64,000 nt of DNA, from the NCBI RefSeq assembly GCF_001194135.2, contig NC_068999.1, forward strand, positions 5,039,591-5,103,590, written 5' to 3'. This DNA comes from Octopus bimaculoides (Eukaryota). Numbering within the stretch: position 1 is the first letter of the stretch; each line of letters begins with the position of its first letter. Below the pieces are notes generated by a model. The model worked only from the letters and a program-made list of their open reading frames with translations, did no database searches and was not told the origin of the DNA. Below are positions 29,243 through 58,847 of this stretch, in pieces. The translations under genes were made by a program, and so were the position numbers.

Positions 29243-29255
29243 GTTGCTATGCAAC
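29243..29255 (-). promoter_or_regulatory. RFX X-box-like palindrome upstream of the Merlin-derived ORF
   Basis: Minus strand GTTGCATAGCAAC fits GTNRC-N(0-3)-RGYAAC and ends 11 bp before the ATG at 29231. Confidence 0.5.
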
Positions 29256-29992
29256 TTAGACGCATAACACACGTCTGGTGCTCAAACGTGTTTTTATTTC
29301 TGTAATGTCACGAAAGTATAAATCTGATTAGTTAAAATTACAAAAAAAGCAAAACAACTTCTTGTTCAGTAATAATGTCTCACAAAAACGTTTGGATTAT
29401 TCTTAATTAACATACAAAATCACATCTGTTTAAAAATGTTGCTAATTGTTCTGTTTACGATCGTAAAAAAAGGAACATAAGTAAATATACCTAAGTATTC
29501 CTTGATGCTAACTCAAACGTGGTAGTAGAATGCACATCACGAGGTAATTAAGTAGGCGACACCTGTTCAAATCAAACAGGGTTTAGTGTTAATTAATTTC
29601 TCCATAAACATCCAGTGTAGTTAGATTCGGTATTTAATACCTGCAAAGTGTAAAATATCCAATTAGTTGCGTCGTTTAATTGTGAAGCGAGGTAGTAATC
29701 CCGAAGCAGTAAATATGATATCTTCTAATCAACAAAGTGTCCTGTCATCTGAACAACAAACCAACAACTGATGGTCACATATCAATGACCCGTCCGGCAA
29801 ATGACCTTTGCCTCTTAAAAAAAACCCCGCGCTTCGACGATGGGTGGAAATTGCCACACGTATCCCTTCGCGACCAGCAGTAGTTGGATGTTTGGGGCGT
29901 AGCACGACTGTGCTATACCGCCACAACAAAATAGTGCTAACATGTCTCACTACACTTTAATGGTTTGAATACTAAAAACTATGTCTGTAAAC

Positions 29993-30098
29993 GGATCTTT
30001 TTTAAAACGGGGGCCACATTTTTCATTAATGTTTTACGTAGTGTTTTTGGTACCGAAAGACTTTCAAACTTCGTATACTTATCTATTTTGTGTTATAG
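29993..30098. mobile_element. Second copy (one end) of the same MITE family, opposite orientation, truncated by an N gap
   Basis: Matches the reverse complement of the right end of 26437-27002 (about 26897-27002) and begins with the same GGATC TIR. Confidence 0.85.
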
Positions 30099-31067
30099 NN
30101 NNNNNNNNNNNNNNNNNNNNNNNNNNNNNNNNNNNNNNNNNNNNNNNNNNNNNNNNNNNNNNNNNNNNNNNNNNNNNNNNNNNNNNNNNNNNNNNNNNNN
30201 NNNNNNNNNNNNNNNNNNNNNNNNNNNNNNNNNNNNNNNNNNNNNNNNNNNNNNNNNNNNNNNNNNNNNNNNNNNNNNNNNNNNNNNNNNNNNNNNNNNN
30301 NNNNNNNNNNNNNNNNNNNNNNNNNNNNNNNNNNNNNNNNNNNNNNNNNNNNNNNNNNNNNNNNNNNNNNNNNNNNNNNNNNNNNNNNNNNNNNNNNNNN
30401 NNNNNNNNNNNNNNNNNNNNNNNNNNNNNNNNNNNNNNNNNNNNNNNNNNNNNNNNNNNNNNNNNNNNNNNNNNNNNNNNNNNNNNNNNNNNNNNNNNNN
30501 NNNNNNNNNNNNNNNNNNNNNNNNNNNNNNNNNNNNNNNNNNNNNNNNNNNNNNNNNNNNNNNNNNNNNNNNNNNNNNNNNNNNNNNNNNNNNNNNNNNN
30601 NNNNNNNNNNNNNNNNNNNNNNNNNNNNNNNNNNNNNNNNNNNNNNNNNNNNNNNNNNNNNNNNNNNNNNNNNNNNNNNNNNNNNNNNNNNNNNNNNNNN
30701 NNNNNNNNNNNNNNNNNNNNNNNNNNNNNNNNNNNNNNNNNNNNNNNNNNNNNNNNNNNNNNNNNNNNNNNNNNNNNNNNNNNNNNNNNNNNNNNNNNNN
30801 NNNNNNNNNNNNNNNNNNNNNNNNNNNNNNNNNNNNNNNNNNNNNNNNNNNNNNNNNNNNNNNNNNNNNNNNNNNNNNNNNNNNNNNNNNNNNNNNNNNN
30901 NNNNNNNNNNNNNNNNNNNNNNNNNNNNNNNNNNNNNNNNNNNNNNNNNNNNNNNNNNNNNNNNNNNNNNNNNNNNNNNNNNNNNNNNNNNNNNNNNNNN
31001 NNNNNNNNNNNNNNNNNNNNNNNNNNNNNNNNNNNNNNNNNNNNNNNNNNNNNNNNNNNNNNNNNNN

Positions 31068-31345
31068 TAAAGCGTCCCCTTTACCTTTGTAGCAGTTGAC
31101 TATGATGCTGCTACACCAGTCATAGGGTATGACTCCTTCGTGTATCACCTGGTTCGTAATACGGGTGACTAGGCTATAGCCAACACTGCCAGATATTTTG
31201 AGCATCTCTGCAGTGATTCCTGATGGGCCGGGGGCTTTCCCGGTCTTCATACTCTTAATTGCTTTATCTACCCTGGTACTATCAACTCGGATAGCTGGTC
31301 CCTCTATTGGGTCGACATAAGGCAGGCTCTCTTTCTCCCATTCAT
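31068..31345 (-). mobile_element. RTE-clade LINE reverse-transcriptase fragment
   Basis: EWEKESLPYVDPIEGPAIRVDSTRVDKAIKSMKTGKAPGPSGITAEMLK...IPYDWCSSIIVNCYKGKGDAL; truncated by gap 30099-31067. Confidence 0.85.
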
Positions 31346-31926
31346 TCTCTTTATTCTCTTTATATAATGTGTATACATATATATTGTTTTCAAAACCTTG
31401 TTTATTTGAGGCATTAAAAAAACCCAGATTGTGCGATATTTTACAAGGTACCATAAACCAAAATGGTTGGTAAAAACCCCAGATCAAAGAATAAAAATCA
31501 GCATTCACTGTCCTGATAAATAAATAACATAGATACACATGATACATACATACATGCGTATGTCCATACATGTATACATACATACATACATACATACATA
31601 CATACATACATACATACATGCGTATGTCCATACACGTATACATACAAACATTATATATAATACAAAATTATTATTTATCATATGCGTTATAAGTATGTCA
31701 ATATATATTTTTTTTATATAAAGCATTTAAAAGAACTTCTTTTCTCATGGAGCATTAGTTTCCAGATGTCTGCAGGACCATATCTGATTAAAACTTCAGC
31801 AGTTGCTTGAATTTATCACCCATTCTTCAAGTAATAAATATTGTGAGAATAGAGATTACAGGAAGCGAAGCAAGACTTCCATTCATTTTCTTTCTCTTTC
31901 TTTCTAAGCAGTTGTTTCTTTGTATC

Positions 31927-34900
31927 TCATGGTAGTTTCTCCTTCCTGTTGACCCAGTTGTAGTAAACTATTTGTACCATTATGACAATATTTAGCAGAA
32001 TGCTGCAGAGAAAGTTCATGGATACTACATGGTCTCCAGTTTCGTACAATGATGTTAAAAGACGAGCTATGAAAACAAAAAAGGAAAAAAAAAAATGTTA
32101 ATAATATTAAAAATAACAATGGTTTCAAATAACAATATGCAATAATAATAATAATAATAATAATCATATGCAATAATAATAATGATTACAAACTTTGCCA
32201 CAAGGGTGGCAATTTTGGGGGAGGGGATGAGTAAACACAGACAAAATTCCGCTAAGCATTTTGCCTGGTGTGTTAACACCTTAATGATAATAATAATTCT
32301 TTCTACTAAAGGCACAAGGCCAGAAATTTTGAGTGGTGGGGGTAAGTCGATTATATTGACCCAGTACTCAACTGGTACTTATTTTATCAACTCTGAAGGG
32401 ATGAAAAGCTAAGTTTGTCCAGCATGGTAACAATTCTGCCAACCCACCACATTAATAATAACAATTATTATTATTATTATTATTATTATTATTTCAAATT
32501 TTCTTCCACAAGGGCAGCTCGTGGGGATGAGTCAATTACATCGACCCTAGTATTCAGCTGGTACTTATTTTATCAACCCCTGAAAGGATGAAAGGCAAAG
32601 TTGACCTCGGTGGAATTTGATGATGATGATGATGATGGATTAGAATCTAAGAAAACAACTTTTTTTTTTTAGAAAAAAATGTTAAATGCCATGGAGTAAA
32701 TTTACCTGTTGAACAAACCGTCGTTGCAAGCCAAGTGGTGAAGCTTAACTGACCAACATCTTTGGACTGGTGCAAGGAATAGATCTGAAGCGATTTACTG
32801 AAGAAAGATATGGGTGTGGCCAATATCTGTTTGAAGTAGACAGGTAGGTAGACACATTTGTATTGAGATAGTATTACTGGTGGTTGCAATGGTGGTCATG
32901 GAAAGATGGTATGGTGGAGCAGGGCATGAGGCAGGCAGTAGATATAGGGGATGTGATGTAGTGATGGCAATAAAGAGGGATCATGACACAGCCGAGGGCC
33001 AGTGCTGTGCGGGTCAATCGAGTGATTAAAGCCTTCCTTCAAAATTCCATGTCATTTATGTTCAAAACATCAACTTAATAATGATGTTATTTTACAAAAT
33101 TCTTCATTATTTTTCAAAATCATCTGAAACAAAAGCAGTGGCTGTGTGGTAAGAAGCTCACTTACCAACCACATGGTTCTGGGTTCAGTCCCACTGCGTG
33201 TCACCTTGGGCAAGTATCTTCTACTATAGCCTAGGGCCAACCAAAGCCTTGTGAGTGGATTTGGTAGATGGAAACTGAAAGAAGCCCATCATATATATAT
33301 TATGCATGTATTTGTGTGTCTGTGTTTGTTCCCCCACCATTGCTTGACAACTGATGTTGGTGTGTTTATGTCCCTGTAACTTAGCAGTTTGGCAAAAGAG
33401 ACCGATAAAATAAGTACTAGGCTTACAAAGAATAGGACCTGGGTCGATTTCTTTGATTAAAGGCGATGCTCCAGCATGGCCGCAGTCAGTTGACTGAAAC
33501 AAGGAAAAGAGTAACAAAAAGTGTAAATAAAAAATAAAGGAGATTGAAAATGAGTGAGACAGAGAGAGACAGACCGGGATCAAGGACGAAGATACAATAC
33601 TTACAATTGCGATTTTTAATACAGCATTTGATATAACTCCAGAAGCTAAGAAAATGCAGCTAAAGAAATAGCTACAAGTATGGTTAAGGAACATAAATTT
33701 ATTCAGTAATAAATTAAGATGTTATCAATAAATGCTACATGCAGTGGGAGTAGAGAAGGCAGATGGAGTGGATAGCATAGGGGACAACCATCCAGAACGT
33801 CTGCAGAAAAACAGGGACATAGAAGGAACCATCTGTGAAATTAGAGATTTTACAGATGTTTTTTATTTCTTTATTGCCCACAAGGAGCTACACACAGAGG
33901 GGACAAACAAGGACAGACAAAGGGATTAAGTCGATTACATCGACACCAGTGCATAACTGGTACTTATTTTATCGACCCCGAAAGGATGAAAGGCAAAGTC
34001 GGCCATGGCAGAATCTGAACTCAGAATGTGGCGGAAGACGAAATACTGCTAAGCATTTCGCCCGGCGTGCTAACGATTCTGCCAGCTCGCCGCCTTTTGG
34101 TCCCTGACCTAGTGGTTACGGGTTCAGTCCCACTATACAGCATCTTTTACTGTAGCTCTGGACTGTGTGTGTGTACGTCCTTGACATCACATGACGTTTG
34201 ATGATAACTGCAAGCAAACAACACCGTCATCATAAATGGTGTCATTCATTTCCTGTTTTCCATGAAAAACATATCTGACCATGGGGCAATATTACCTTGC
34301 TGAGAAACAGTTTAGGGTTGGTGTCAGCAAAAGGACTCTAGCTGTAGAAAATAAAATCTTCCTCAACAAAATCTGTCTGATTCATGCAAGCATGGAAAAG
34401 TGGTGATGGCAATGATGATGATGGTCGTGGTGATGTTGGTGTTGGTGGTGGTCATGATGATGGTGATGATGATGAGGAGGTCAAAGTATGAGCTTAAAAG
34501 GATACACCATGAATCCAGTTACAACTCTCATGTCGAATCTATCATTGTAGTAGAGCAAAATACACAGAAGAATTAAATCTGTAACAAAACAAAAAATACA
34601 ATTGTATTTGAATTATAGCCTGTTGAAAGGTACAATCAAACAAAAATAACCTATATATATATATATATNNNNNNNNNNNNNNNNNNNNNNNNNNNNNNNN
34701 NNNNNNNNNNNNNNNNNNNNNNNNNNNNNNNNNNNNNNNNNNNNNNNNNNNNNNNNNNNNNNNNNNNNNNNNNNNNNNNNNNNNNNNNNNNNNNNNNNNN
34801 NNNNNNNNNNNNNNNNNNNNNNNNNNNNNNNNNNNNNNNNNNNNNNNNNNNNNNNNNNNNNNNNNNNNNNNNNNNNNNNNNNNNNNNNNNNNNNNNNNNN

Positions 34901-34934
34901 NNNNNNNNNNNNNNNNNNNNNNNNNNNNNNNNNN

Positions 34935-34977
<43 letters not shown>

Positions 34978-35866
34978 CATATAGTGTTTTTTGAAGTCTG
35001 TGTTGCGTTGTGTTGACAGACTTGCAATTGAAATTTCCACGTTTTAATCAAAACTTGTTAGTTACTAAGAGGACAACACTACCTACTTATCTATCTTTCG
35101 TTGTATTTCCTTCTCGACAACAACTTTTTCTCTTCCCCTTCTTTCCTCTCTGTACACAAGAGTTGTTAAGGACAGATAGATGGAGATCAGCTTCTCTTTT
35201 GTAAATCAAACGAATGTAGTTTTTCAATAGAAATATGGTAGCAGAAGGGTTAATATTGTAAAATATGTTTCCATATTTTAAAATATATTTATGTTTACTG
35301 TAGGACAATGTTAAGGTTATCATCAAAAATGACTGATGGTAGAATATAAAAAAAGACATAAAAGTTTTAAAAAATAAAGATAAATAGTTTCTTTTTTCTC
35401 ATTTACCTTGTGGCACCAGGAAGATATATTCGGAATAACTAGTGAATGGGTAATTCATGGCAAAATGGTACACCAGAACAATGGAATGGCTGTCAAGAAA
35501 AGATCACGAAAACAAACAGTAAAACAGAAAAATTAATTAATTGATTAATTAATTAATGGAAATAAACAAATAAGTTGCCTCCATTATCATCACCTCCACT
35601 ACTACCATCGCCACCACCACTACCTCATTACCACCACCATTCCTGGAAAAACAAACAAACAAATAAAGAGCAAACAAAAGGTGACCAACTTACCCACAAG
35701 TCTCAGTCAATATTGCCCGCAAACTGACACTTTTGGCCTTCTTAGCGTGAAGAATATTTCTAATCTGTGGCATCTTAATGAACATACTGCACAGAGCAAT
35801 TAAAAAACTAATTATGTAAAAATGGAATGTACTAGAGTCACTGTTATTAATCTCGTAGCCAAACAT
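31927..35866 (-). CDS. SLC66A3: PQ-loop repeat membrane protein, SLC66A3/PQLC3-like (MPDU1 family), about 218 aa, 6 coding exons
   Basis: Minus-strand exons 35866-35694, 35489-35407, 34578-34506, 33671-33605, 32826-32706, 32066-31927 (TGA), all AG/GT and phase-consistent. Protein: MFGYEINNSDSSTFHFYIISFLIALCSMFIKMPQIRNILHAKKAKSVSLRAILTETCGHSIVLVYHFAMNYPFTSYSEYIFLVPQDLILLCILLYYND...ILATPISFFSKSLQIYSLHQSKDVGQLSFTTWLATTVCSTARLLTSLYETGDHVVSMNF. KMPQI is the PQ motif, and YSEYIFLVPQD resembles PQLC3 YLEYPILIAQD. There is an in-frame upstream stop and a 5'UTR acceptor at 35927. The exon-4 acceptor could alternatively start at 33659. The paralogue MPDU1 is not fully excluded. Confidence 0.85.
33135..33515 (+). 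mobile_element. SINE family B (tRNA-like head GGCTGTGTGGTAAGAAG...GGGTTCAGTCCC)
   Basis: Copies at about 1486-1630, 9115-9250, 13630-13690, 40035-40200, 44695-44835, 49443-49570, 59050-59355(-), 62555-62720, 63940-64000(-). Confidence 0.8.
33868..34093 (-). mobile_element. SINE family A (GAGCTGGCAGAATCGTTAGC...GTTCAAAT...GGGGTCGAT), best-preserved copy
   Basis: More than 15 diverged copies, for example about 394-560, 1926-2076, 2138-2330(-), 6836-7035, 10535-10740, 17969-18128(-), 18146-18317, 32330-32445(-), 40360-40560, 56935-57125. It has a B-box-like GAGTTCAAAT. Confidence 0.8.
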
Positions 35867-36269
35867 ATTTAGGCAGTAAATCAGCTTTACACTGGGTTGT
35901 AGAGTTCTTCTTTGTTATAGAAAGATCTGGAATGATGTGTCTCGTGTCAGGAAACCAAAGTTGCAGTGTGTGTATTGCGGAAAATAGACATCATCTGAAA
36001 TAAAAGAAAAAAAAAAAGGAAAATGTTTTTGTAAATATATATATATATGGTTTGTAGACTTTACCTGTTGTTCTTCTGAAATTGATAAACTTCTTAAAAA
36101 TCTCTTGACCATCTCCGGGCAAAACAAAACTACAAGTAGCAGAACCAGCATCAACACCACTGCCACCAGTAAGGTGATGCCCCAGCATGACCGCAGTGCA
36201 ATGACTGAAAGAAAGTTTGCATATGCGTCTGTGCATACACACACACATATATATTCATACACAATACAT

Positions 36270-36301
<32 letters not shown>

Positions 36302-36731
36302 NNNNNNNNNNNNNNNNNNNNNNNNNNNNNNNNNNNNNNNNNNNNNNNNNNNNNNNNNNNNNNNNNNNNNNNNNNNNNNNNNNNNNNNNNNNNNNNNNNN
36401 NNNNNNNNNNNNNNNNNNNNNNNNNNNNNNNNNNNNNNNNNNNNNNNNNNNNNNNNNNNNNNNNNNNNNNNNNNNNNNNNNNNNNNNNNNNNNNNNNNNN
36501 NNNNNNNNNNNNNNNNNNNNNNNNNNNNNNNNNNNNNNNNNNNNNNNNNNNNNNNNNNNNNNNNNNNNNNNNNNNNNNNNNNNNNNNNNNNNNNNNNNNN
36601 NNNNNNNNNNNNNNNNNNNNNNNNNNNNNNNNNNNNNNNNNNNNNNNNNNNNNNNNNNNNNNNNNNNNNNNNNNNNNNNNNNNNNNNNNNNNNNNNNNNN
36701 NNNNNNNNNNNNNNNNNNNNNNNNNNNNNNN

Positions 36732-36779
<48 letters not shown>

Positions 36780-36904
36780 ACATATATATATATGTATACA
36801 TACATATACATATATAATATATACACATATATATGTATGTGTGTGTGTGTGTGTGTGGTGTGTAGTGGCTTAATGCAAGCATGGCATGGATTCGATCCTC
36901 GATC

Positions 36905-37283
36905 GCCATATTTAATTTAACAGTTCAACAGCACTTTTCCCAAGTGCTGTTGAACTGTGACTGAAACAATTACATTTGCCAGATGCCTTCGCTAAGCAGA
37001 ATAACAGCTTTGCCACTTGAACCTTCTAACCTCTTCTATGCCACCAAAAGCTAGAATAGAGATAACAGGTACCACCAACGAAAACTATTGTTCTCAATAA
37101 TATGGCTTTAAATGATTATTCCGGAGCATAGTCATCATCTACTTCAATTACTGCTTCCCATTTGCTTGGCAGACGGTCAGACCGTCATTTAAAGATGCTT
37201 TTGTTAAATATTGTTATTGTTTTTTTTTTTATATATAAAATTTGTTAAAAAACAAAGCCGCTATAATTATGCACCAACCCAAT
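36905..37283 (-). mobile_element. Internally deleted mariner remnant
   Basis: TIR-like TATTGGGTTGGTGCATAATTAT (reverse complement at about 37262-37283) plus a C-terminal peptide DRLPSKWEAVIEVDDDY near 37110-37180. The left boundary is uncertain. Confidence 0.45.
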
Positions 37284-37431
37284 AATTATACATACCAACC
37301 CGTCGTGGTTTTGGATATATACAAAGTGACGGCAAATAAATATTTCTTTACAACTTCTATCACTGTTCTTCGTTCATCTTGCACACCTGCAACAGCAATA
37401 CCTGACTCCAACAAAAATCACAATACAAACC

Positions 37432-37445
37432 GTTACACTGGCAAC
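37432..37445. promoter_or_regulatory. X-box-like motif at a putative SLC66A3 non-coding first exon
   Basis: GTTACACTGGCAAC fits the consensus. A minus-strand donor (TTG|GTATGT) near 37295 suggests a 5'UTR exon at about 37295-37450. Confidence 0.35.
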
Positions 37446-37556
37446 CAACACCTTAAAATCGATCGTTACAATTGTTGACCCTCAACTGTAACGAAGAACT
37501 AACCGTTATGTATATAAAATTATATATAAGTCTAAAATTTTATATATATACATATA

Positions 37557-37834
37557 CAGGGTTGGCCAAAAGTAACCCGATTATAAAAATCAAAGTTCCA
37601 TAAATACTATTTATAATTCTGTATTGACTCGAATGGAAAAATATGGGTTAATATCTAGGCGTGGATCTAGATATTAACCAAAATGTGTTGCTCAAGAAGG
37701 ACTTCAGTTTGAACTATTTTCATGGTGTTTCATATTTAGATGCTTTTATAAAATTCATTTAGTTAAACATAAATAAATCTTTGAATTAAATCGTTTTGAT
37801 TTACTGTGTCAGGTGACTTCTTTGGGTCAACCTT
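37557..37834. mobile_element. Tc1/mariner-type MITE in the SLC66A3-RSPH10B intergenic region
   Basis: TA-flanked imperfect TIRs CAGGGTTGGCCAAAAGTAACC and GGTGACTTCTTTGGGTCAACCTTA; internal 13-bp stem GGTTAATATCTAG...CTAGATATTAACC. Confidence 0.5.
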
Positions 37835-38243
37835 ATATTTATATATACACACATACATACAACGTACACACACGTATATGTATATATATATATATATATA
37901 TATAGCGATCTTACGTTNNNNNNNNNNNNNNNNNNNNNNNNNNNNNNNNNNNNNNNNNNNNNNNNNNNNNNNNNNNNNNNNNNNNNNNNNNNNNNNNNNN
38001 NNNNNNNNNNNNNNNNNNNNNNNNNTATAATTTAATAATAAGGGTAGAAATTGATATTAATCAATTAAAAGCAGTGGTCCAGCATATTAAAAACAATCCG
38101 AAGATTAAAATTATATTACATACACAAATAAGAGGAATGACCAGCAAAATATGCTAGAAATAGATGCCGAATCATTTAACCAGGTGATTCGGCATCTATT
38201 TCTAGCATATAGGAGTCCAGTTTTGCTGGTCATTCCTCTTATT

Positions 38244-38275
<32 letters not shown>

Positions 38276-38420
38276 ATTATTATGGTATATATAAATATAA
38301 AATTATATATCAATAAATATGAAATTATGTATGTATGTACGAAAGCAAAGCGATAAAGTAAAAAAAAGAAAAAGAAAGTAAGAAGTTGTTGAGTGTCGGT
38401 CAACTGTTTTCGAGTACGTT

Positions 38421-38433
38421 GTTGCCTGGCAAC
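38421..38433 (+). promoter_or_regulatory. RFX X-box of RSPH10B
   Basis: GTTGCCTGGCAAC, 38 bp upstream of the ATG and overlapping/followed by CCAAT. RFX control of motile-cilia genes is established. Confidence 0.7.
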
Positions 38434-38471
38434 CAATACACGCTAACACATGTTCTAGCGAAAGACAGAGA

Positions 38472-41400
38472 ATGGCGAGGAAGAAAGTGGCGAAAAGAAC
38501 GGACGAGATATTAGTTACCGAGGAAGAAAAGACGGAGCCGAGTTCTTGGGAAAACGAAGACGTGGAGGAAACGGAACAGCAGCAGCAACCACCAGCCGAA
38601 GCGGTGCAAGATGAGACGGAAGTGACAACTTCTTGTGTGACTGAAGGCCCCTTATTGACCAATGTGGTGATAAAAACGTAAGCGATCGTCATTGGAATTT
38701 AAACGTTTGTTGTCAAAACATCAGGCAACAGCGTTTACAGGGTGTATAGGAACACTACACTGTGTATGTGTGTGCGCTTGTGTGTACAGTGATTCCTCGA
38801 TTATCGCGGGGGTTGCGTTTCCAAAACCCTCCCCCCGCGATAGGTGAAAAATCCGCTATGTAGAAACAGTACTGTACTGTGTGTGTATATATATATATAT
38901 ATTTTTTAAATTATTTTTATAATTTGTATATATTTATTTTATTACAAATGCAGAAACATCACGGAGGAATCGGACGCAAGCTTAAGTAATAAACCGCGAT
39001 GTGGCGAGGGATTAGTGGTGCATATATAAATAGATACGGTAGTAGTTCGGTTTTCGGACAGCTCTGATCGCGAATGAGTCGTGCTTTATATATATATATA
39101 TATNNNNNNNNNNNNNNNNNNNNNNNNNNNNNNNNNNNNNNNNNNNNNNNNNNNNNNNNNNNNNNNNNNNNNNNNNNNNNNNNNNNNNNNNNNNNNNNNN
39201 NNNNNNNNNNNNNNNNNNNNNNNNNNNNNNNNNNNNNNNNNNNNNNNNNNNNNNNNNNNNNNNNNNNNNNNNNNNNNNNNNNNNNNNNNNNNNNNNNNNN
39301 NNNNNNNNNNNNNNNNNNNNNNNNNNNNNNNNNNNNNNNNNNNNNNNNNNNNNNNNNNNNNNNNNNNNNNNNNNNNNNNNNNNNNNNNNNNNNNNNNNNN
39401 NNNNNNNNNNNNNNNNNNNNNNNNNNNNNNNNNNNNNNNNNNNNNNNNNNNNNNNNNNNNNNNNNNNNNNNNNNNNNNNNNNNNNNNNNNNNNNNNNNNN
39501 NNNNNNNNNNNNNNNNNNNNNNNNNNNNNNNNNNNNNNNNNNNNNNNNNNNNNNNNNNNNNNNNNNNNNNNNNNNNNNNNNNNNNNNNNNNNNNNNNNNN
39601 NNNNNNNNNNNNNNNNNNNNNNNNNNNNNNNNNNNNNNNNNNNNNNNNNNNNNNNNNNNNNNNNNNNNNNNNNNNNNNNNNNNNNNNNNNNNNNNNNNNN
39701 NNNNNNNNNNNNNNNNNNNNNNNNNNNNNNNNNNNNNNNNNNNNNNNNNNNNNNNNNNNNNNNNNNNNNNNNNNNNNNNNNNNNNNNNNNNNNNNNNNNN
39801 NNNNNNNNNNNNNNNNNNNNNNNNNNNNNNNNNNNNNNNNNNNNNNNNNNNNNNNNNNNNNNNNNNNNNNNNNNNNNNNNNNNNNNNNNNNNNNNNNNNN
39901 NNNAGAGGGAAAAACCTCTCCATCAAAACAAAACTCTCCCCAGACACAACAAAATCTGTTTCAACACATGGATTCACATAAAGAATATTGCAAACCAGAT
40001 AAAAAAACGAAGTGTGTGTGTGTGTGTAGTGAGAGAGGCATGGGTGGGGGGCTTTGTGGTAAGAAGCTTGCTTCCCAACCACATGGTTTCAGGTTCAGTC
40101 CCACTGGGTGGCACCTGGATCAAGTGTCATCTACTGTAGCTTTGGGCTGACTAAATCCTTGTGAGTGGATTTGACAGACGGAAACTGAAAGAAGCCTGGG
40201 GGAGTTTACCATAAGTAAAACGAAAAATTAAAGAGGTAAACAGAGAAATATGTTACAGAAGTTTAGTTTGATCGTTTTTACCCAATCAGAAAACAGGACT
40301 TGTACGTAATACCTGTCTTCAATTTTTCAATATTACTGTATTCCCTAAATAAAACTGTGAGCTGACAGAATGGTTAGAATGCCAGGCAAAATGCTTAGCG
40401 ACATTTCATCTGTGTTTATATTCTGAGTGCAAACTATGCTGAGGTCAACTTTGCCTTTCATTTTTTCAGAGTCGATAAAATAGATACCAGTCATGCACTG
40501 CGGTCAATGTAATCGACTTACCCCCTCCCCTGGACTTGATGGCCTCATGCCAAAAGTTGAAATCAATATTATTGTATTTTCTTGACCTTGAAAAAGTTTG
40601 AAAGCCAAAAATAAGACTTATATTAACACACAATCACATTAAACAATAATGATGACAACAACAATGACAGTGATGATGTTGTGAATTACATCAATGGCAG
40701 TAGCAACAACAACAACATGAAAATAGACACAAAGAATTTATTAAAAAATATTTGCAAAATGTATTTACTTTCTTTTACTTCAGATATGAGGGCAAATTTT
40801 TAAATGGCTTGTTTGAAGGTGAAGGTTATATGGAATTTATTGATGGGCATATTTATAAAGTAAGTATAATCATTGTTTGACATAAAACTGCAAATGAATA
40901 TATATGTATGTATGTTTGTATGTAAGTATGTATGTATGGTTGTATGTGTGTNNNNNNNNNNCACAGCATTAATGAGACGAGTGAAAGAACTTCTAAGATT
41001 GATGGAAGGAAAGGAAGCAATTGAACTTCAGATAGGAAATCTGGATTGAAAGCGTGCAACAGGGTGGGGCCCTATCAAAGGTATGTTCAAGGAGTAGGGG
41101 GTGTTAAACTGGGTGTCAGGTTAAATCTGCTGCCAATAAAAGACAGAAACGGTGGTCTCTTCAATGGGTTTCCATAAACAGAGACATGGAAAATATTGGT
41201 CCAAAATGGAGTACCGCCTCCACATCGGAGCAACACTACAGCAATTTATTCCTTGTGTGCATCGACTAGCAATTGTTGAAGACAAATGTTGACAGCATTG
41301 TCTTCACAGGTATCGGAGTCAGGAGGGTGCGAAAGCCATAGATACAGACCCCCCCCCCCNNNNNNNNNNNNNNNNNNNNNNNNNNNNNNNNNNNNNNNNN

Positions 41401-45542: not shown

Positions 45543-45599
<57 letters not shown>

Positions 45600-46100: not shown

Positions 46101-46138
<38 letters not shown>

Positions 46139-48720: not shown

Positions 48721-48775
<55 letters not shown>

Positions 48776-50445
48776 AAACAAGAAAAATGATATGTTCTAT
48801 ATTTAAGAGATGAGGAATTATGTATATTATTTATCATTATTTACATTTGACGGATATTGGAGGGTGTATCAGCCGAAACGTTGTGTTAACAACAAACAAG
48901 ATGAGGACAAATAGCCGTCAAATGTAAATAATGTAAATAATGTAATACCATGTTGTTTTTGCTCCCCCCCAATGAGCTTCATTATGCATTTGACTTGCTC
49001 TGGTTCCCCAAATATCTCTGCAGCTCCCGAAAAGGAAGTGAACATGAAATCAGTCGACAGTAATTTCATAATGGACATCAACAGCTTACTGAAAGGTTAC
49101 AAAGGTGTTGACCCCAAACAAGAACTGACACAGGTAATTAACATTAATTAACGTATTCTTAGAATTGCTGCCGCTACTAAAAGTTTCCCTTGAGTAAAAA
49201 AAAACACAATGATAATTAGTTTTACACAGAAAATGTAACGATACTGCAATGGGATGCACCACTATGCCATTGCAGCATGTTGCATTGGTGCAGAAATATG
49301 AATAACTGATACTGCAATGAAACTGCATTGTGTTGCACTAACACTGCATGACACAGTACGTTGCAGTTACAATGCATTGACACTGCAGTGACATGACAGC
49401 AGCTTGTACTTTATTTGGAATGTGTTGCACTAATACTGGACAGACATGGCTGTGTGGTAAGACGTTTGCTTCCTAACCACATGGTCCAGGGTTCAGCCCC
49501 CCTGCATGGCACCTTGGGCAAATGTCTTCTACTATAACTCCAGAGTGACGAAAGCCTTGTAAGTGCATTTGATGGAGATATATACACACTGTGTATATAT
49601 ATATATATATGTGTGTGTGTGCATGTGTATACATATGTGTGTGTACATTTATATATATATGTGTGTAGTTGTGTGTGTGTGTATAAATAGGTGGTGGTGT
49701 TGGTGGTGACAACTGTGGTTGCAGTAAAGGAGGTGAGGGTGATGGTGTTTGTAGTAACAGTGATGGTGGCGGTGGTGGTGGTGGTGGTGGTGGTGGTGGT
49801 AGTGGTGCAGCTTCTAATTCACTTTAATCCAGTATTACCAATATTCTATGACAGGCACCAGAGATACTTTCTTCCACTAAAATCCTCGTCGCTGGAATTA
49901 ACCCATAATCCGAGTAGTAGATCTGTAGCCAGTGATCAAGACTCTTCACCATGACGAGTGCAAAGGGTGCCGATGCCTGAGTTCAGGCCAAGGGTTGTAT
50001 AGAAGACCCAGGGGCATTTATCGCAGGGGAGAATTGGTGGGGGGACGAAGAAGTGCAAGTCACTCTAAAATATATTGCATCAAAGTCCACCAAAATCCAT
50101 TGCAATGTGTTGCAACGGGTAATTGCAATGTGTTGTATCTGGAGGTAATTCTGTTTTCTTTAATTTCCATTTGGTATCATTTGGCATCACTACACCTGCC
50201 ATTGTTAATTACAGGTGAATAAGAACGTGTGGAGGCATATAGCATTTTTGAAGAAGATCTACTTGTTTTATGCAAGTTTGGGCCAGGAACCAGCCATTGA
50301 TAATGTCTACTTGATGGACAATCTTCAGTTCTGGAGATTTCTCAAAGACTGTCGCTTGCATCATCATGGCTTTACCCTGATGCAAATGGATAGATTCCTT
50401 GGTAAGTTCTTTTAGTGTTCTTTACCATTTCGAAATCAAGTGATA

Positions 50446-50489
<44 letters not shown>

Positions 50490-51719
50490 CCATCACCATC
50501 ACCATCATTATCATCATCATCATCAACAACAACAACAACAACAACAAGGCAGCAAGCTGGTAGAATTGTTAACATTTCAGACAAAATGCTTAGCAGTATT
50601 TCTTCTGGCTGGCACCAGGTTCAATAGCCTATAACCTTTACCAGGCTCAGTAGCCATATACCCTTCAGCAGGTCCAATAGCCATATAACCTTCAATAGTC
50701 TGTAATCTTTACCAGGTCCAATAATCGTATAATCTTTACTAGGGTCAACAGACAGATATCTTGCATTAAGGTTCAGTAGCCAATAATTTTTATCAGAGTC
50801 AATAACCGACAACCTTTAGAGTTTCTAATCAAATTATGCTGATCTAAAAATTTAAGTTTTAATTAAGTTTCAGAATATGCAAATTCTCCTTTTTATTATA
50901 GTTTTTAAAAAATATTATTTATTAGATTTAGAATTATGTGGAGTAGGTTTGAAATATCTGCAAATTTTTTTTCTCTTGTTCTATTTAGTTTTGTCATGAA
51001 TTTAATATATTTGTAAATAATGATTTTGAATATTTTGTTTATATCAATGTTATAACTGAATGATTGTTTGAATAGGTTTACAATTTTATAATTTTTTTTA
51101 AAAAAGAAATTGTATATAACTTTTTGGTTTTTCATCATTTCATCTGTCATTCATTGTGTAATTCTTTCTTTCCCAGCGAAAGATAAAAAAGTAACCAGTC
51201 TCCATGACCCTTTTGGTAAGTTGCTGCTACGGGAATTTATAGCGAACCTTGTGATCTTGGCCTTCAAAGCATACAGTGCACAATACGATGACGCAAAAGC
51301 AAACTTAAAGTAGGTCATGTCATCTTTATCATCATTAATATCTACACACACTTCCACCACTACCACTTACTTCTTTCACATATAGCCAGGTGGTTAACCG
51401 AAACGTCAGTGATTTTATAATTGCTGTTTTACCTACATCAGTAACAGAAGGTTGTGTTTTCAGCATGTGGCTGGCAGTGAGCATTTGCTACTGATGGAGT
51501 GCAACAAGTCAGAAATGCACATCTAGCGACTTCACCACCACTGCTGGATGATTTTTGCCTGCTACTGATATAATTTTGTGTTTTTAAACACAGTGTGTCC
51601 ATACAAGTTATTATCCCTGGATGAATACTGTACTTAATTTGTTTTTCGTAATGTATCTATGTATCTGCATTAAGTAATTTATGTATTTATTTATATACAT
51701 GTGTATGTGTGTATGTCTG

Positions 51720-51766
<47 letters not shown>

Positions 51767-51781
51767 GTATGTATATGTTTG

Positions 51782-51813
<32 letters not shown>

Positions 51814-54800
51814 TGTATGTATGTATGTATTAAAGGAAAAAGGATGACTTGAAGGCCTACTATGGATCCCTAGAAGGCTGAAATTATATTTATTCAGAAC
51901 TCTTGACGAATTTTTAGATCATGTGACATGTCAGTTAAAAAAAGGGGAAAAAAACTGAGTCCAAATGTTTCACTTTCCATTCATCTAGGTACCATTTTCT
52001 TCTGCTGGATTGGTGCTTCTATCAACTTCTCAAAAACAACATCTACCCCAATGTGTTCACCGTTAGAGGTAAACAATCCACAGATTTAAACCATCTTGTT
52101 ATTTATTTTATGTTATTTGTTTTTTTTTTCTTCTCTTTCAAAAGAATTTAACTCATCAAGAGAACCTAACCCCAAGATTCTTGTGAATTCATGTGTTAAT
52201 GTTGTTTCTTGGGAGGGTCATTATGTCAGTAATGAACACACCTACTGGTTCTATTTCTCTTCTTTATTTGCCAACTAGCTAACCACTTAACCAATTAACT
52301 AATTGATTTTTGGATTACTTATTTGATCAATCAATCATTCGGGTTTATCAAAGTCTCATAATTGTTATTTTGTCCCCATTTTTAACCTCATCTATGACAT
52401 GCTCTTTCATTGTGTTTAAGGATGCAGTTGCATACATTTGTTTCAAAATGCTACAGAGCTTTGAATTACGTTTTCTTTCACTGCAGGCCATATCTTCACA
52501 GAAGTCCGCAGAGCCATGAACATAATGGAACACGTCCAGGAGGTTTACAAAATCTACACTGCCATTTGTAAACCACGAAAGGTGAACAGACATTTTTTTT
52601 AATAAAAATTTCCAGTACCAACAGATGGGATGGAAAAGTCACTCTGTTTGTCTGCATGATGGATCGATGGGGTGTCTGATGCTACAGAGACACCACACAA
52701 TGAACTTTTATATCCCCATGTATGGTAGTAAAAGCAGCCCACACTGTCATCATCATCATCATCATCATCATCGTTGTCGTCATCATTTAACATCCGTTTT
52801 CCATGTTGGCATGGTTTGGACAGTTTGATAAGAACTGGTCAATTGTAAGTTGTGGCATGGTTTCTATGGCTGCATGCTCTTCCTAATGCCAACATTGTCT
52901 CTTATAAGTGTATATCTGATGGTATGGAAAGATTTGACTTGGTCCTTATTTCATCAACCCCAAAAGGATGAAAGGCAAAGTCAACCTTGAAGAAATTTGA
53001 ACTCAGCACCATTTTGTCCAATGTGTTGATGGTTCTGCCACCTCACCACCTTAAAAATAATAATGATGACGATGACGATGATGACAACGACGACAAATTG
53101 TCAGGTGAAAATGTGTTAATTAGTTGAATGTACTGACCATTCCCCTTCATTCTGTCTTTCACAGTTACCTCCCCATGATTCTTCCATGAAGATGAGAGAC
53201 TGTTTAGTCATACTCAAGGTAAACTAAAGCATCTTTTGTATTTTAAAAGTGTGTGTGTGTGTGTGTGTGCGCACATGCTTGTGTGTGTCTGGGTGTTTTC
53301 TGCATAGAGAGGCACATATACTTCTCTTCCTCCCCCTCCTTCACCGCCTCCTTCTCCTCTCATCTTCATCCTCTGTATTTTGTTTATATATTAACCAATG
53401 TGTCTTTCTCTACGGAAAGGACTTAAACCTGATCAATGAGAACCTCACCGCCAAAGCTGCCATTGATGTTTTGGCCGAAGATGATCCCAATGTTATCGTT
53501 GATGGTGACTACAACATGGAGTTGGAGGTAAGAGCATTCGACTTCCAATTTTATTTAATCCATCAGCATACACAAGCATAACATATGCATATACCAAATA
53601 TATATATATTTAGAACAGAGGCAGCTGAAGGAAAAGTCCCATAAGTGGCTCGTCTGTCTTCCTATGCATTCATTCTGATGTCTGTAAAAAAAGTCTGTTT
53701 TTTGTGCTTTATGTTCCCGTTCCTTTTTTGACGTCCTGTACCTGGATATGCATCTATATAGACATGTAGATGTAGGTATGTACATATATGTATGTATACA
53801 TGCATATGCTCTTATATCATTTGCATTATTATTATATATATAAAAATATACAAGGTGTAAAGATAATGAAGATTCAGTATACACCACGTAGCAAAATTAT
53901 GAGTTGAAAATATGCGTAAAAAAAATATAAAAAGTGGAAGAGAAATGCCTTCGTTTCATATAGTTTAATATCTTTTTATAAATATATACATATTAAATGG
54001 ACATCGTGAAATCCAACCAGTTTTCACTATTTAAATTAGCTTTTCAAGGGTCATTGTACAGTAATCAGTTCCCATGTTTTTCTGTTCATAGATGACCTAC
54101 CTTGAGTTTCTGGAAGCGCTTGTTGGTTTTGCTGAGATTTACATCACAGAAAGCGTGGTAGAGTCAATGACGATACCTCTTGATACCGTCACGTCAAGTC
54201 GGTCTCCAAAGACAAGCAGTCAACCTGTCATGTCACCTGTCCTCAGCACCAATGTGTCCAGCACTTCCTTCCAACAACACTCGAAGACAAGAGAGACAAC
54301 AGAGAATAGGACATCGGAGACAGTGGTAAGTGGTGGTTTTTAGGGTTTTTTTTAGTCTTGTTGGTGGAAATATAGAAATGGGGAGGGAGATGGGTGGATG
54401 GTCTTTACACATTTTCACTTTCACACACACACACACGTGCACTTGTGTGCTTGCATGCATCAGGTTAAACAGATGGACGGACAGACAGATGGATGGAGAG
54501 CTAGTTATGTATTGACATTGAGACAGAGAGAGGGGGAGAAAAAGAAAGAGAGAAATAGGAAAAGTGAGAGAAAGAAAGAGTATAGAGAGAGAGACAGTAA
54601 GAGAGGAAGAGGCGGGGAGAGAAATGGAGAGAGACACAAAGGCAGAGAGAGAGAGCCAGAAATTGAGAAAGAGTGTGTGAGAGGGACACTCATAAAACAT
54701 TATCTGTGACCGATGAGCTAACTACCCATCATCATCATTGTTTAATGTCCATCTTCCATGCATGCATGGGTAGGACAGTTCACAAGGGCTGACCGGGTAG

Positions 54801-56416
54801 AAAATGTACTCTATCCTACTCTGCCTGTTTTGGGAGGGTTTTTACAGCAGGATGCCCTTCCAAATGCCAACCACTTTACAGTGTAGACTGGATGCTTCTT
54901 ATGTGGCACCAGCACCGGCAGGGTCACCAAGTAACTTGCAAGACAAGGGAATAGAATATTGAGAGGAGATGGGGCATTGGAGGAGGGGATCTTGTGTCAG
55001 ATGATAAAATCACATAAGCCAATGAGGAAGCCTCTATGTAGTCATTCAATATGTTAGAAATAGCAGCTAAATCTCTTTAAAAACCACAGTCTACTTTCTT
55101 AAAAAAAAAAAAGAGAAATGGCAAATCAGAACTTATTCTTTAATTAATTAAATGGTAAAATATTAATTTTTTGTAGCAAGAGGAACAAACAAAATCTTTA
55201 TCTGTGTTGTTCAGTCCACTTGAGAGTTTGATGGAAACGAGTGACAGCAAAGAGACAACAAACGGTATGTTAATAAGACTATTGTTGTTGCTGTTGTTGT
55301 GGCTGCCATTGCGGTCATGTTGGTTTTGTTGCTGTTGTTGCTTTTGTAGTTGTTGTTGCTGTTGTTGTTATTGTTGCTGTTGTTGTTTTACAATTACAAA
55401 TTTTGTGAATGGAAAAATGATGGGAGGGGTGGAGTAAAGAAGGGAAACATTGATTAGAATTCAGAGGCAAAAATTAAAATTACTCACACACACACATTCA
55501 TACACACACACACACACACATTCATACACACACACATTCATACACACACACATTCATACACACACATACACATTCATGCACACACACACACACATTCATA
55601 CACACACACATTCATACACACACACATTCATACACACACACACATACATACACATTCATACACACACACATTCATACACACACACACACATACATACACA
55701 TTCATACACACACACACATTCATACACACACACACATACACATTCATACACACACACACACATTCATACACACACACACACCCATACACACCCATACACA
55801 CACATGCACACAAAATGATATTTCATTTTAATTAGATGCAAATTTCAGTTTTTTTTTGTTCTTGTAATGCCCCCTCCCCACTAGCTACGTTAATGATTGT
55901 AACTGTTGAAACAGCAGTTGAACTTTGATTGCAATTATGAAGCAACTGTGAAATATTTACTATTATAAAATCTCTAATTTAAATTCTAACAAATTTTACT
56001 TTCTATTTTTTTTTTTTCCCCTTAAAAAAATAATACACATGTACATAAAAACAGAAGAAACTGAAGCAGAGGTAGAGGCTGAAGAACTTGACCAAGCTAC
56101 AAAAAAGTACAACTTCTGGACTCACCAAATACACATTTTCTTCATCGAGAAATTCATTCGTCCGGTCAGCAACCTTTTGAACATGCAGCAGACGGTCAAC
56201 AAACTGGTGAAAGAAGAATTAAAGAAAATAAAGAAGAAGGAGAAACAGAAGGCAGCGACAGAGCGATGGCACCAGTTACGCCGAGAAGCAGTAGAAGAGG
56301 CATCGCTGAGTCAGGAACCGGAACAGGAACACGACCAGAACATTGCTGAAAACGTTCATGTCTTTGATGAGTTTGGTGAAGTGAAGACGAGCGGTCCAAA
56401 TGGACATGCAACATAA
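38472..56416 (+). CDS. RSPH10B: Radial spoke head 10 homolog B (MORN-repeat ciliary protein); 16 exons visible, at least one missing at gaps
   Basis: Exons 38472-38677, 40784-40859, 43307-43375, 45047-45105, [missing], 46327-46548, [probably missing], 48510-48627, 49024-49133, 50215-50401, 51177-51309, 51989-52068, 52487-52581, 53165-53218, 53420-53527, 54092-54325, 55177-55264, 56055-56416 (TAA). MORN repeats include YEGKFLNGLFEGEG, GSFHQGLMHGRGYYKWNDGVTYE and YHGDWQYDLPHGWG. The RSPH10B-type post-MORN motifs are LKKIYLFYASLG, LQFWRFLKDCRLHHH, LPPHDSSMKMR and MTYLEFLEAL. Confidence 0.88.
38787..39103. mobile_element. pogo/Tigger-like non-autonomous element (one end) in RSPH10B intron 1
   Basis: TA followed by CAGTGATTCCTCGATTATCGCGG, a Tigger-type terminus; runs into gap 39104-39903. 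Confidence 0.55.
43799..44071. mobile_element. hAT-type MITE (273 bp) with GAGTC/GACTC subterminal repeats
   Basis: TIRs CAGGGCTGTGGAGTC and GACTCCACAGCCCTG; degenerate 8-bp TSD CTAGCAAC / TTAGCAAT; many internal GACTCC motifs. Confidence 0.75.
50617..50790. repeat. Degenerate about 26-bp tandem repeat (AGGTTCAATAGCCATATAACCTTTACC-like)
   Basis: Six to seven units beginning AGGT(T/C)CA(A/G)TAGCC in an RSPH10B intron. Confidence 0.65.
55484..55815. repeat. (CACACACATTCATA)n compound minisatellite
   Basis: More than 20 degenerate CATTCATA/CA units, directly visible. Confidence 0.9.
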
Positions 56417-56433
56417 AAAGAAAACCTACAAGT

Positions 56434-56439
56434 AATAAA
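56434..56439 (+). terminator. Candidate polyadenylation signal (AATAAA) for RSPH10B
   Basis: AATAAA 17 nt after the stop codon. Confidence 0.35.
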
Positions 56440-57789
56440 GCAATACATTCCTCCATGGAATATCAAAATGGTATTTCCTTTGGAAAATAGTGGAAGATGG
56501 TGGTGGGTGAGAAAGGGAAGGAATAATGGAGGCAGGGGTGGGGAAGTCAGGGCTGAATTATTTCTTTTTAAGGATTTCTTTCATAAAATAACAATTGCTT
56601 TACTAAAATAAATCTTGTTTTGTTTTGTTTTGTTTTTTTTTTTGCATTTATTTTGGGGGTTTTCTGTGTCGCACCATTTAATATTTACTCCACAAATTTA
56701 ATTATTTTAAACAGAGTCAAGTTTGTGACTCTTAAAACCCTCTCCCTCCTAACCCCCACTTCCTTGCCTCCCTCCATCTATCTATCTTTCTCTCCCTCTC
56801 ACACTAACTTTTTCAACTGCCTTTCTCCCCAACACTCCCTCTCTCTCTCCCTCTCCTTTTCTCACACACACTCAAACACCTCCCCGCTCTGTGTCTCCAT
56901 GTAATATCTACATCACCTAATATTTTTAGCTCCTAAGGTGGCGAGCTGGTTGAAATGTGTAGTGCTATTTCATCTGTCTTTACATTCTGAGTTCAAATTC
57001 CACCGAGGTTGACTTTGCCCTTTGTCCTTTTGGGGGGGTCGATAAATTAATTTTGGTTGCGTATTGGGGTCGATCTAATCAACTAGCCCCCTCCTCAAAA
57101 ACTTTGGGCCTTGTGCCTAGAATAGAAAAGAATATTTTTAGCTCCTGTCATGTTTCTCACTCACTCTCCTCCTCCTGTTTTTCTCTTTCGCCTCCCCTTC
57201 TCTCTCCTCCCTCTTTCTCTTTTCCTCTCCCTCTCCATCACCATCTCTCCCTCCATATAACATCTACACAGAAACACATATCCACACAATGAATAACCAT
57301 AAATCAGCTCCAATAGCCAATATATCATTCATCTGTTATCACTGGATATTAATCAATTCATCACATTATAATTACATCCTATTTACATTATAGAACAAGT
57401 GGCTGAATCTGCCATGGACATTTGCATCCTTAATATAACCCTTTACTCCCAGGCAAACTTAACATGACACAGAGTGTTTATCAATGTTAGACTTACCCAA
57501 ACACAGCTACATTTCACTCAACTCAATTTCATTCACAACAATATGATAGAAGATATTTGTCTAGGGTGCTGTTGAGTGAGATTGAACCTAAGATTTCACG
57601 ACTGCAGGCTTAAACAGAGAAGGAAAGGCAGCAGCGATGACCTCTTTTTTTTTTGATTTTGTTTTTCAGGGCTTTTGTGACTGCATAAATGGAAACAGCT
57701 GTAGGAAGAAATGATTATCAATTTATTAATAAATAAATATTAACCACTAACTTACCATTTTCTCTGAATTTAATACAAATTTTATATAT

Positions 57790-58330
57790 CATCATCATCA
57801 TCATCATCGTTTAACGTCCACTTTCCATGCTGGCATGGGTTCGATGATTTGACTGAGGACTGGCAAACCAGATAGCTGCACCAGGCTCCAATATGATCTG
57901 GCAGAGTTTCTACAGCTGGATGCCCTTCCTAACGCCAACCACTCCGAGAGTATAGTGGGTGCTTTTACGTGCCACCGGCATGAGGGCTAGTCAGGCAGTA
58001 CTGGCAACAGCCACGCTCAAGTGGTGTTTTTACATGCCACCTGCACAGGAGCCAGTCCAGCGGCACTGGCAACGACCTTGCTCGAATGTTTTGTTCACGT
58101 CACCGGCACAAATGCCAGTAAGGCGATGCTGGTAACGATCACGCACAAATGGTGCTTTTTACGTGCCACCAGCACGGAAGTCAATCAGCTGCTCTGGCAG
58201 TGATCGTGCTTCGATGGTGCTCTTAGAGTTCCACTGCCACGGGTGCCAGTCATCAAATTTGCGAATTTGATTTGGTTTTGATTTCACTTGCCTCAACAGG
58301 TCTTCACAAGCAGAGTTTAGTGTCCAATGA
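57790..58330 (-). mobile_element. Dispersed repeat ending in a (GAT)n tail, probable 3' end of an RTE-type LINE or its SINE partner
   Basis: Core CGTTTAACGTCC...CATGCTGGCATGGGTTGGACG...CAGCTGGATGCCCTTCCTAACGCCAACCAC recurs at about 9258-9660, 19019-19180, 48138-48345, 52750-52900, 54722-54950, 59450-59770, 61870-62090, 62720-63290. Confidence 0.7.
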
Positions 58331-58832
58331 AGGAAAAGTATGCATAAGTGGGCTGGTTACAGCNNNNNNNNNNAAGGAAAAGTATGCATAAGTGGGCTGG
58401 TTACAGCCCTGGGTTATGGTCTCACGTGGCTTGCCGGGTCTTCTCACGTACTGCATGTTTCCAAAGGTCTAGCCCCCAACGCCTACACACCAATTTCAGG
58501 CCTTGTGCCTATGGTAGAAAGGATCATCATCATCATCGTCATCATCATCATCGATTTATGAGGAAACAAAGTCATACGGGGTGGCAGACAGTATGCTAAA
58601 TAGAGAAATCTGTAATAATCTGGTAGTTTACAGACTTCTGATAATATTTAAACATAAATATGAGATCTCATATTCAGTGGAAAGAAGGCAAATGCAATAA
58701 TGTGGCGTTCATGCCTTTCGTAATAATGTTAGATGTATAAACGATGAACGAGATACTGAATTTGTAACGAAAGAAAACATTAAAGTGAGAGTAGTCTCCC
58801 TTTAGTTCGTGGAATTCTTTACAACTGAAGCA

Positions 58833-58847
58833 GTTGCCAATAGCAAT
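58833..58847 (+). promoter_or_regulatory. RFX X-box-like motif of DNAAF11/LRRC6
   Basis: GTTGCCAATAGCAAT (one terminal mismatch), 72 bp upstream of the ATG. Confidence 0.55.

Follow-up and report, generated by a model that had tools for sequence, protein, structure and literature searches.

RFX-type X-boxes before two motile-cilia genes of Octopus bimaculoides, and a near-palindrome, most likely incidental, before a neighbouring Merlin-derived reading frame

The 64,000-nucleotide (nt) stretch of Octopus bimaculoides DNA analysed here (the window; contig NC_068999.1 of NCBI RefSeq assembly GCF_001194135.2, positions 5,039,591 to 5,103,590 of the forward strand) carries a conserved gene block: an SLC66A3-like gene on the minus strand, an RSPH10B-like gene on the plus strand and DNAAF11 (LRRC6/tilB), also on the plus strand. 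The window also contains an open reading frame (ORF) derived from a Merlin transposase and, in its left part, an M16-peptidase (nardilysin/IDE-like) gene. An earlier note on this DNA had pointed to four motifs that resemble X-boxes, the sites bound by RFX transcription factors, and had proposed that the Merlin-derived ORF has joined the ciliary regulon of its neighbours. We found that the box before RSPH10B is well supported as a conserved RFX site and that the box before DNAAF11 is a plausible one, and the 13-mer before the Merlin ORF is most likely incidental. The features concerned are as follows.

28368..29231, minus strand: intact 287-amino-acid ORF derived from a Merlin (IS1595-like) transposase, ATG at 29231-29229
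29243..29255: X-box-like 13-mer GTTGCATAGCAAC (GTTGCA T AGCAAC), 11 nt before the Merlin ATG
35693..35866, minus strand: first coding exon of the SLC66A3-like (PQ-loop) gene, ATG at 35866, placed by tblastn against the Argonauta locus and by translation
31930-32067, 32701-32802, 35402-35491 and 35693-35866, minus strand: coding exons of the SLC66A3-like gene
37432..37445: X-box-like GTTACACTGGCAAC with one perfect half-site, between the SLC66A3-like and RSPH10B-like genes
38421..38433: X-box GTTGCCTGGCAAC, a perfect 13-nt palindrome (GTTGCC T GGCAAC), 38 nt before the RSPH10B ATG (38472)
38472..38677, plus strand: first coding exon of the RSPH10B-like gene (MARKKVAKRTDE...NVVIK), GT donor at 38678
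58833..58847: weak X-box GTTGCCAATAGCAAT (GTTGCC AAT AGCAAT), 72 nt before the DNAAF11 ATG (58920)
58920..58929, plus strand: first coding exon of DNAAF11, 10 nt, ATGGTTGCAA followed by gtaagc
61323..61416, plus strand: exon 2 of DNAAF11, acceptor cag followed by TTACAGAGG at 61323

Each of the four boxes has one exact match in the window, and all four lie exactly where the earlier note had placed them. The distances of 11, 38 and 72 nt to the ATGs of the Merlin ORF, RSPH10B and DNAAF11 were confirmed as well. No gap falls between a box and its ATG, each pair lying within a single ungapped piece (28173-30098 for Merlin, 38026-39103 for RSPH10B and 58374-59838 for DNAAF11). The identities and start codons that had been assigned to RSPH10B and DNAAF11 were upheld by comparison with Argonauta, oyster and Elysia. 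The RSPH10B-like gene, whose further exons reach at least 54271, has MORN repeats (59.8 bits in Pfam), and its best match among solved structures is FAP266, the Chlamydomonas orthologue of RSPH10B (PMC7999657). Its N-terminus MARKKVAKRTDE (MARKK) agrees in start codon with that of the Argonauta hians orthologue, MARKKTLKRSDE, and in that species, too, the same divergent PQ-loop gene lies upstream of RSPH10B. Over its first 86 residues DNAAF11 shares 86% identity with the oyster tilB homologue, and it starts with MVA/ITEDL (the stroke marks the exon junction) where orthologues from oyster, Elysia, sponge and others start with MVRITEDL; its 10-nt first coding exon is also found in Elysia. The PQ-loop of the SLC66A3-like protein scores 27.5 bits in Pfam, and its N-terminus, MFGYEINNSDSS, has the Argonauta counterpart ...SMFGHEDS. 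The SLC66A3 ATG is at 35866, and therefore the box at 37432, which had been assigned to the likely first exon of this gene, lies outside its first coding exon. Aligned with intact Merlin transposases, the Merlin ORF begins where they do.

Known X-boxes of C. elegans, Drosophila and vertebrates, bound by RFX, DAF-19 or dRFX, are imperfect palindromes of 13-15 nt with GTTRCY and RGYAAC half-sites around a 1-3-nt spacer, and the boxes described here share this layout. The RSPH10B box also resembles known ciliary X-boxes in its position, tens to about 300 nt upstream of the ATG, and as a conserved island in a diverged promoter. Unlike the known sites, the DNAAF11, 37432 and Merlin boxes each depart from the restricted consensus at one position. 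To judge the boxes we applied three published consensuses (RTNRCC N1-3 RGYAAC, GYTRYY N1-3 RRHRAC and the most degenerate, RYYNYY N1-3 RRNRAC) and used two yardsticks. One was the number of sites that fit GTTRCY-N1-3-RGYAAC with one mismatch or none, set against a null of 400 first-order Markov simulations. The other scored sites with a half-site matrix built from 26 promoter-proximal X-boxes of dRfx-dependent Drosophila genes (Laurencon et al. 2007, Table 2).

By mismatch count the window holds 13 sites, all four boxes of the earlier note among them, where 4.5 are expected, a count that did not occur in any of the 400 simulations; of perfect matches there are 2, with an expectation of 0.2. 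By matrix score, four sites reach the threshold of the Merlin box where 2.2 are expected (P=0.19). The excess is thus significant by mismatch count and not by matrix score, and we therefore placed weight on position relative to the ATG rather than on the count. In the matrix ranking the RSPH10B box is first (22.7 bits), the Merlin box fourth (13.4), the DNAAF11 box fifth (12.9) and the 37432 box eighth (11.7); the corresponding chance expectations per window are 0.008 sites of at least 22 bits, 2.2 of at least 13.3, 2.4 of at least 12.9 and 4.8 of at least 11.7. The RSPH10B box is the sole one of the four that lies far beyond chance.

The RSPH10B box has no mismatch to the published consensus and is the best RFX-type site in the window. 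Its counterpart in Argonauta hians, GTTGCCTAGCAAC, stands 81 nt before the RSPH10B ATG and is the top site of a 26.5-kb locus (20.3 bits). The Argonauta locus and the window share coding exons alone, at about 74% identity, and the only non-microsatellite match between their promoters is the box itself (38421-38435 against locus 9908-9922, 14 of 15 positions), with flanks that are otherwise unalignable. Furthermore, both GTTGCCTGGCAAC and GTTGCCTAGCAAC are letter-identical to validated Drosophila dRFX sites, which sit 56-321 nt from the ATG. In mouse, a set of 28 genes shows lowered expression in ependymal cells of both the Rfx2-/- and the Rfx3-/- genotype together with promoter binding by RFX1, 2 and 3, and Rsph10b and Lrrc6 belong to this set (PMC7498320). 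Both are thus direct RFX targets in mouse, in line with the RFX ciliary regulon to which the earlier note assigned the two genes. The octopus locus has the same two genes with an X-box beside the start; it differs in that it belongs to a cephalopod, in that the two genes are adjacent on one strand and in that their regulation is here predicted from the DNA. The data point to an ordinary conserved RFX site at RSPH10B, a footprint between the octopodid and Argonauta, and this is what established knowledge predicts.

The DNAAF11 box combines one perfect half-site (GTTGCC) and a 3-nt spacer with a second half whose last base is T in place of an invariant C. It is off the published consensus by this one mismatch, and it contains CCAAT, so that it can also be read as a CCAAT box. 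A validated Drosophila site with the same spacer length, GTTGTC AAT AGCAAC, resembles it. Degenerate second half-sites have been described for motile-cilia genes, and genes of the tilB/LRRC6 class have Fox and Rfx motifs near their starts (PMC4168999). With its one good half-site, the box is a plausible RFX site.

The box at 37432 is 1.03 kb upstream of the RSPH10B ATG and, across a 430-N gap, 1.57 kb upstream of the SLC66A3 ATG. The sole other site in the Argonauta intergenic region is GTGACCAGACAAC at locus position 8642 (12.6 bits, 2 mismatches), a weaker candidate that cannot be aligned with it.

Two other X-box-like sequences in the window deserve mention. The second-best X-box of all, GTTGCCATTGGTAAC at 19369-19383 (18.7 bits, 0.19 expected per window), lies in an intron of the M16-peptidase gene, about 40 nt in, past a GTAAGT donor, and holds a palindromic CCAAT/ATTGG. 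CCAAT or CCATTGG thus occurs inside or adjoining three X-boxes (38431-38437, 58836-58841 and 19373-19379). X-boxes are paired with Y-boxes, and RFX with NF-Y, in the promoters of major histocompatibility complex class II genes, and the arrangement of CCAAT and X-box recalls this pairing. The other sequence belongs to an octopus family of short interspersed elements (SINEs). SINE-type repeats are common to the window and the Octopus sinensis loci at 81-89% identity, and a weak X-box-like GTTGTCAAGCAAT (11 bits) is present in every copy seen of this family (window 33339-33351; O. sinensis locus 490, 919, 4999 and 7115). This SINE-borne sequence could have seeded many low-grade RFX-like matches across the genome.

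The Merlin ORF is 37-39% identical to intact Merlin proteins of 292-295 amino acids that carry PF12762 (phmmer, E about 1e-56 to 1e-58), and a library of 1.8 billion proteins yielded 3701 relatives. Its own match to the Pfam family DDE_Tnp_IS1595 reaches 18.4 bits, under the cut-off of 27. The first catalytic D is replaced by E141 (VQLEEI for VEIDES), the second is kept (D202, in SDxW), and the HTQxIE block with the third catalytic residue is unrecognisable, with a net deletion; the DDE triad is not intact. Neither terminal inverted repeats of the GG...CC type nor target duplications of 8-9 nt were found within 28173-30098, a piece that continues for just 195 nt past the stop codon before a gap. 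A 107-nt perfect inverted repeat (26897-27003 and 29992-30098) was considered as a pair of Merlin ends and rejected, as it belongs to a foldback element resembling a miniature inverted-repeat transposable element (MITE). No second copy of the island on which the ORF lies was found in the window or the comparison loci. In length and N-terminus the ORF is like members of the Merlin superfamily (related to IS1016/IS1595; Feschotte 2004; PMC8101967); unlike them it has no first catalytic D, third block, discernible element ends or second copy in the window.

The closest relative is LOC115225578 of O. sinensis (49-52% identity), which NCBI annotates with two isoforms. It occurs at one locus and again on an unplaced scaffold; the two are 99.6% identical over 18.7 kb, and the second is therefore a haplotig and not another transposon copy. 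The ORF in the haplotig is interrupted. Between the Merlin ORF and this paralogue the proportion of synonymous differences (pS) is 0.76, which is saturated, and that of nonsynonymous differences (pN) is 0.34, and the parts of the third catalytic block that are missing differ between the two proteins. The two ORFs are ancient paralogues whose frames were kept open. The ratio of nonsynonymous to synonymous rates (dN/dS) against the paralogue was discarded as a test of selection, because, with synonymous sites saturated, it carries no information on the time after catalysis was lost. An open frame with degenerate catalysis fits domestication; it also fits divergence as a functional element followed by recent loss of catalysis. 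Certain ciliate and dinoflagellate Merlin ORFs without terminal repeats have been proposed as domesticated (PMC8101967), and the octopus ORF is like them in its intact frame, its lack of recognisable ends and its degenerate DDE triad. Domesticated transposase genes are defined by a syntenic orthologue under purifying selection and by expression, whereas the Merlin ORF, like the boxes described here, is known from sequence alone. Among the relatives, two proteins of 1611 and 1750 amino acids each have 10-11 distinct stretches that resemble a Merlin transposase; they are either an uncommon fusion or tandem arrays annotated as a single gene.

The 13-mer before the Merlin ORF has perfect GTTGC and GCAAC cores. 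Only two GTTGC-N3/4-GCAAC sites exist in the window, this one and the RSPH10B box. Position 6 of the Merlin box is A (on the other strand, position 8 is T and not R), which places it outside every published consensus, including the most degenerate, and A is found at this position in none of the 52 validated half-sites of the matrix. None of the repeats observed in the window and the comparison loci contains the 13-mer. The idea that an X-box is a general feature of Merlin elements was rejected: none was found upstream of the ATG at five Merlin loci, comprising four more distant elements and the O. sinensis paralogue, which has no X-box of at least 10 bits within 2 kb upstream. The promoters of the window ORF and the paralogue gave no alignment, and low-stringency blastn of the intergenic region returned mostly microsatellite noise. 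An unrelated Merlin copy (GCA_000701005.1, locus positions 3366-3378) has a perfect X-box, GTTGCTCAGCAAC (17.9 bits), within its coding sequence; such matches therefore do arise by chance. Merlin-related sequences are exceptionally numerous in O. bimaculoides, with 191 reported (PMC8101967), so that a small number of chance boxes close to the ATGs of such elements is to be expected across the genome.

The Merlin ORF lies on a 1,926-nt island bounded by N gaps of 702 and 969, and it is thus through scaffolding that it comes to lie beside the cilia genes. At its right end (29992-30098), up to the gap, this island repeats 26897-27003 in inverted orientation with 100% identity. The window as a whole has 38% G+C, a CpG observed/expected ratio of 0.45 and 14 N runs. 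The RSPH10B gaps at 39104-39903 and 40952-40961 are intronic, because the Argonauta protein joins exon 1 directly to the exon that matches window 40779-40865. An identical run of 34 nt stands on either side of the 10-N gap at 58364-58373 (58330-58363 and 58374-58407); this gap is therefore a contig-overlap artefact, and the sequence is continuous. Transposon debris covers the whole stretch from 22 to 31.4 kb and includes the following.

22285-22905, minus strand: mariner-like transposase remnants
26436-27003: foldback/MITE-like element with 38-nt terminal inverted repeats
31068-31330, minus strand: reverse-transcriptase fragment of a long interspersed element (LINE)

The foldback/MITE-like element has 90-nt inner hairpin arms (26578-26667 and 26767-26856) and an inverted telomere-like core at about 26670-26740, in which (CCCTAA)n faces (TTAGGG)n. 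A second copy of it at 29992-30098 is partial, 100% identical and abuts the gap at 30099.

The proposal of the earlier note, that the Merlin ORF was domesticated and that its promoter-proximal X-box is bound by RFX, with expression in the motile-cilia/sperm-flagellum programme, is in our judgement rather unlikely. It draws support from the perfect cores 11 nt before the ATG, a pattern found otherwise only in the conserved RSPH10B box, from the fourth rank in the matrix with a chance placement of about 0.4%, and from the over-representation of palindromic boxes among true dRFX targets (Laurencon et al. 2007, PMC2375033). That the ORF is intact while its catalytic residues are degenerate, that no terminal inverted repeats were found, and that the O. 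sinensis paralogue is annotated with two isoforms also suit a domesticated gene. However, the box has one position outside every published consensus, it is seen in one genome, the paralogue has no upstream X-box, and an X-box lying upstream of a gene's ATG in a single species is not predictive of RFX dependence, whereas conservation is (Laurencon et al. 2007, PMC2375033). The surroundings are rich in transposons, and tblastn found no Merlin homologue in the Argonauta locus, where 3 kb downstream of SLC66A3 were covered. The exact ORF was also absent from public assemblies and the protein collection, which is uninformative, as the RSPH10B query likewise gave no Octopus protein. A functional RFX site before the Merlin ORF is accordingly a doubtful prospect, and co-expression of the ORF with the cilia programme is more doubtful by a small step. 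To the same low degree we would credit the larger scenario in which a dead Merlin transposase, kept open in octopods, acquired or retained an RFX X-box and is expressed within the motile-cilia and sperm-flagellum programme.

The 13-mer, or its left part GTTGCATAG, may instead have been inherited from the 5' region of this Merlin lineage, where it would have served the element, for example as a promoter element or a protein-binding site, and would resemble an X-box in this copy only. In the O. sinensis paralogue the sequence 81 nt before the ATG (locus 9907-9919) is GTTGCATAGTAGG; it does not qualify as an X-box, and it shares with the Merlin box the 9-mer GTTGCATAG (P about 0.001 by Markov resampling) in upstream regions that are otherwise unalignable; this hints at constraint on the spot. 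The match was noticed post hoc, however, the distances to the ATG differ (11 and 81 nt), four more distant Merlin elements lack the motif, and the absence of definable terminal repeats leaves no 'subterminal' placement for it, so that we consider this origin improbable. We give equally little credence to a misplacement or misorientation of the island 28173-30098 by scaffolding, which would make the ORF no true neighbour of the cilia genes. A 1.9-kb piece between gaps, ending in an inverted repeat of a type that breaks or misjoins assemblies, invites this suspicion. Scaffolders, however, usually rely on read pairs to position such pieces, a true inner boundary of the repeat shows that this is no simple overlap, and the relation of the box to its ATG is independent of where the island lies.

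The account that we favour, and hold to be somewhat probable, is that the cilia genes carry RFX boxes and that the Merlin ORF is a catalytically degenerate relic with an incidental 13-mer. The two motile-cilia genes would bear promoter-proximal X-boxes as their orthologues do across animals, and an RFX dimer would bind the palindrome near the transcription start and turn the gene on in ciliated or flagellated cells. The Merlin 13-mer would be either a near-palindrome that arose by chance or part of a 5' region passed down in this Merlin lineage; we infer that it has no RFX function, and it should probably not be taken as a sign that the ORF entered the ciliary regulon. The regulon proposed in the earlier note is thus well supported for RSPH10B, with its conserved box, and plausible for DNAAF11; its extension to the Merlin ORF, for which there is a single near-consensus 13-mer in one genome, is not supported. 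Conservation in orthologous promoters was seen for the RSPH10B box in Argonauta and not near the DNAAF11 ATG in Elysia, the latter being weak evidence either way. That the motif might be ordinary Merlin sequence was not borne out by the five Merlin loci, which have no X-box upstream, although the 9-mer shared with the paralogue comes near to what the earlier note had named as refuting its proposal, while falling short of a decision. The rough estimates given there, about 2 chance matches per window and less than 1% within about 100 bp of a given ATG, agree with the computed values of 2.2 at the grade of the Merlin box and about 0.4%.

Several observations weigh against this account. Of the four validated ATGs, three have one of the window's five best sites in the 100 nt upstream, an arrangement with a probability of about 3e-6 if sites were placed at random, and a box as good as that of Merlin would fall by chance into the 100 nt before the Merlin ATG in about 0.4-0.7% of cases. 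The Merlin box shares the 13-nt architecture and 1-nt spacer of the RSPH10B boxes and is one base, that at position 6, off the Argonauta box. The 287 codons of the Merlin ORF stayed open despite the lost catalytic residues, and the only close relative is an ancient paralogue, which gives the ORF the look of a domesticated gene; the 9-mer shared with that paralogue belongs here too. On the side of the cilia genes, no box with at most 2 mismatches was found within 400 nt of the DNAAF11 ATG in Elysia or in the locus of another eukaryote, and no site of at least 10 bits across these two loci, with 3 kb upstream covered. Because non-coding first exons are possible upstream, this lack is weak evidence either way. 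The 120 DNAAF11 homologues listed include no cephalopod, and the comparison of this box was made without one.

What is established here adds one more case to a regulon that is already well known. For RSPH10B, and probably for DNAAF11, the RFX-to-motile-cilia wiring appears to extend to cephalopods with the same box sequence as in flies. The RSPH10B result was to be expected, and it is of use mainly as a positive control when mollusc genomes are scanned for X-boxes. If the membership of the Merlin ORF were true, it would be a rare case of a transposase-derived gene in the ciliary regulon, in which a DNA-binding protein of transposon origin was recruited into an ancient and otherwise very stable regulon.

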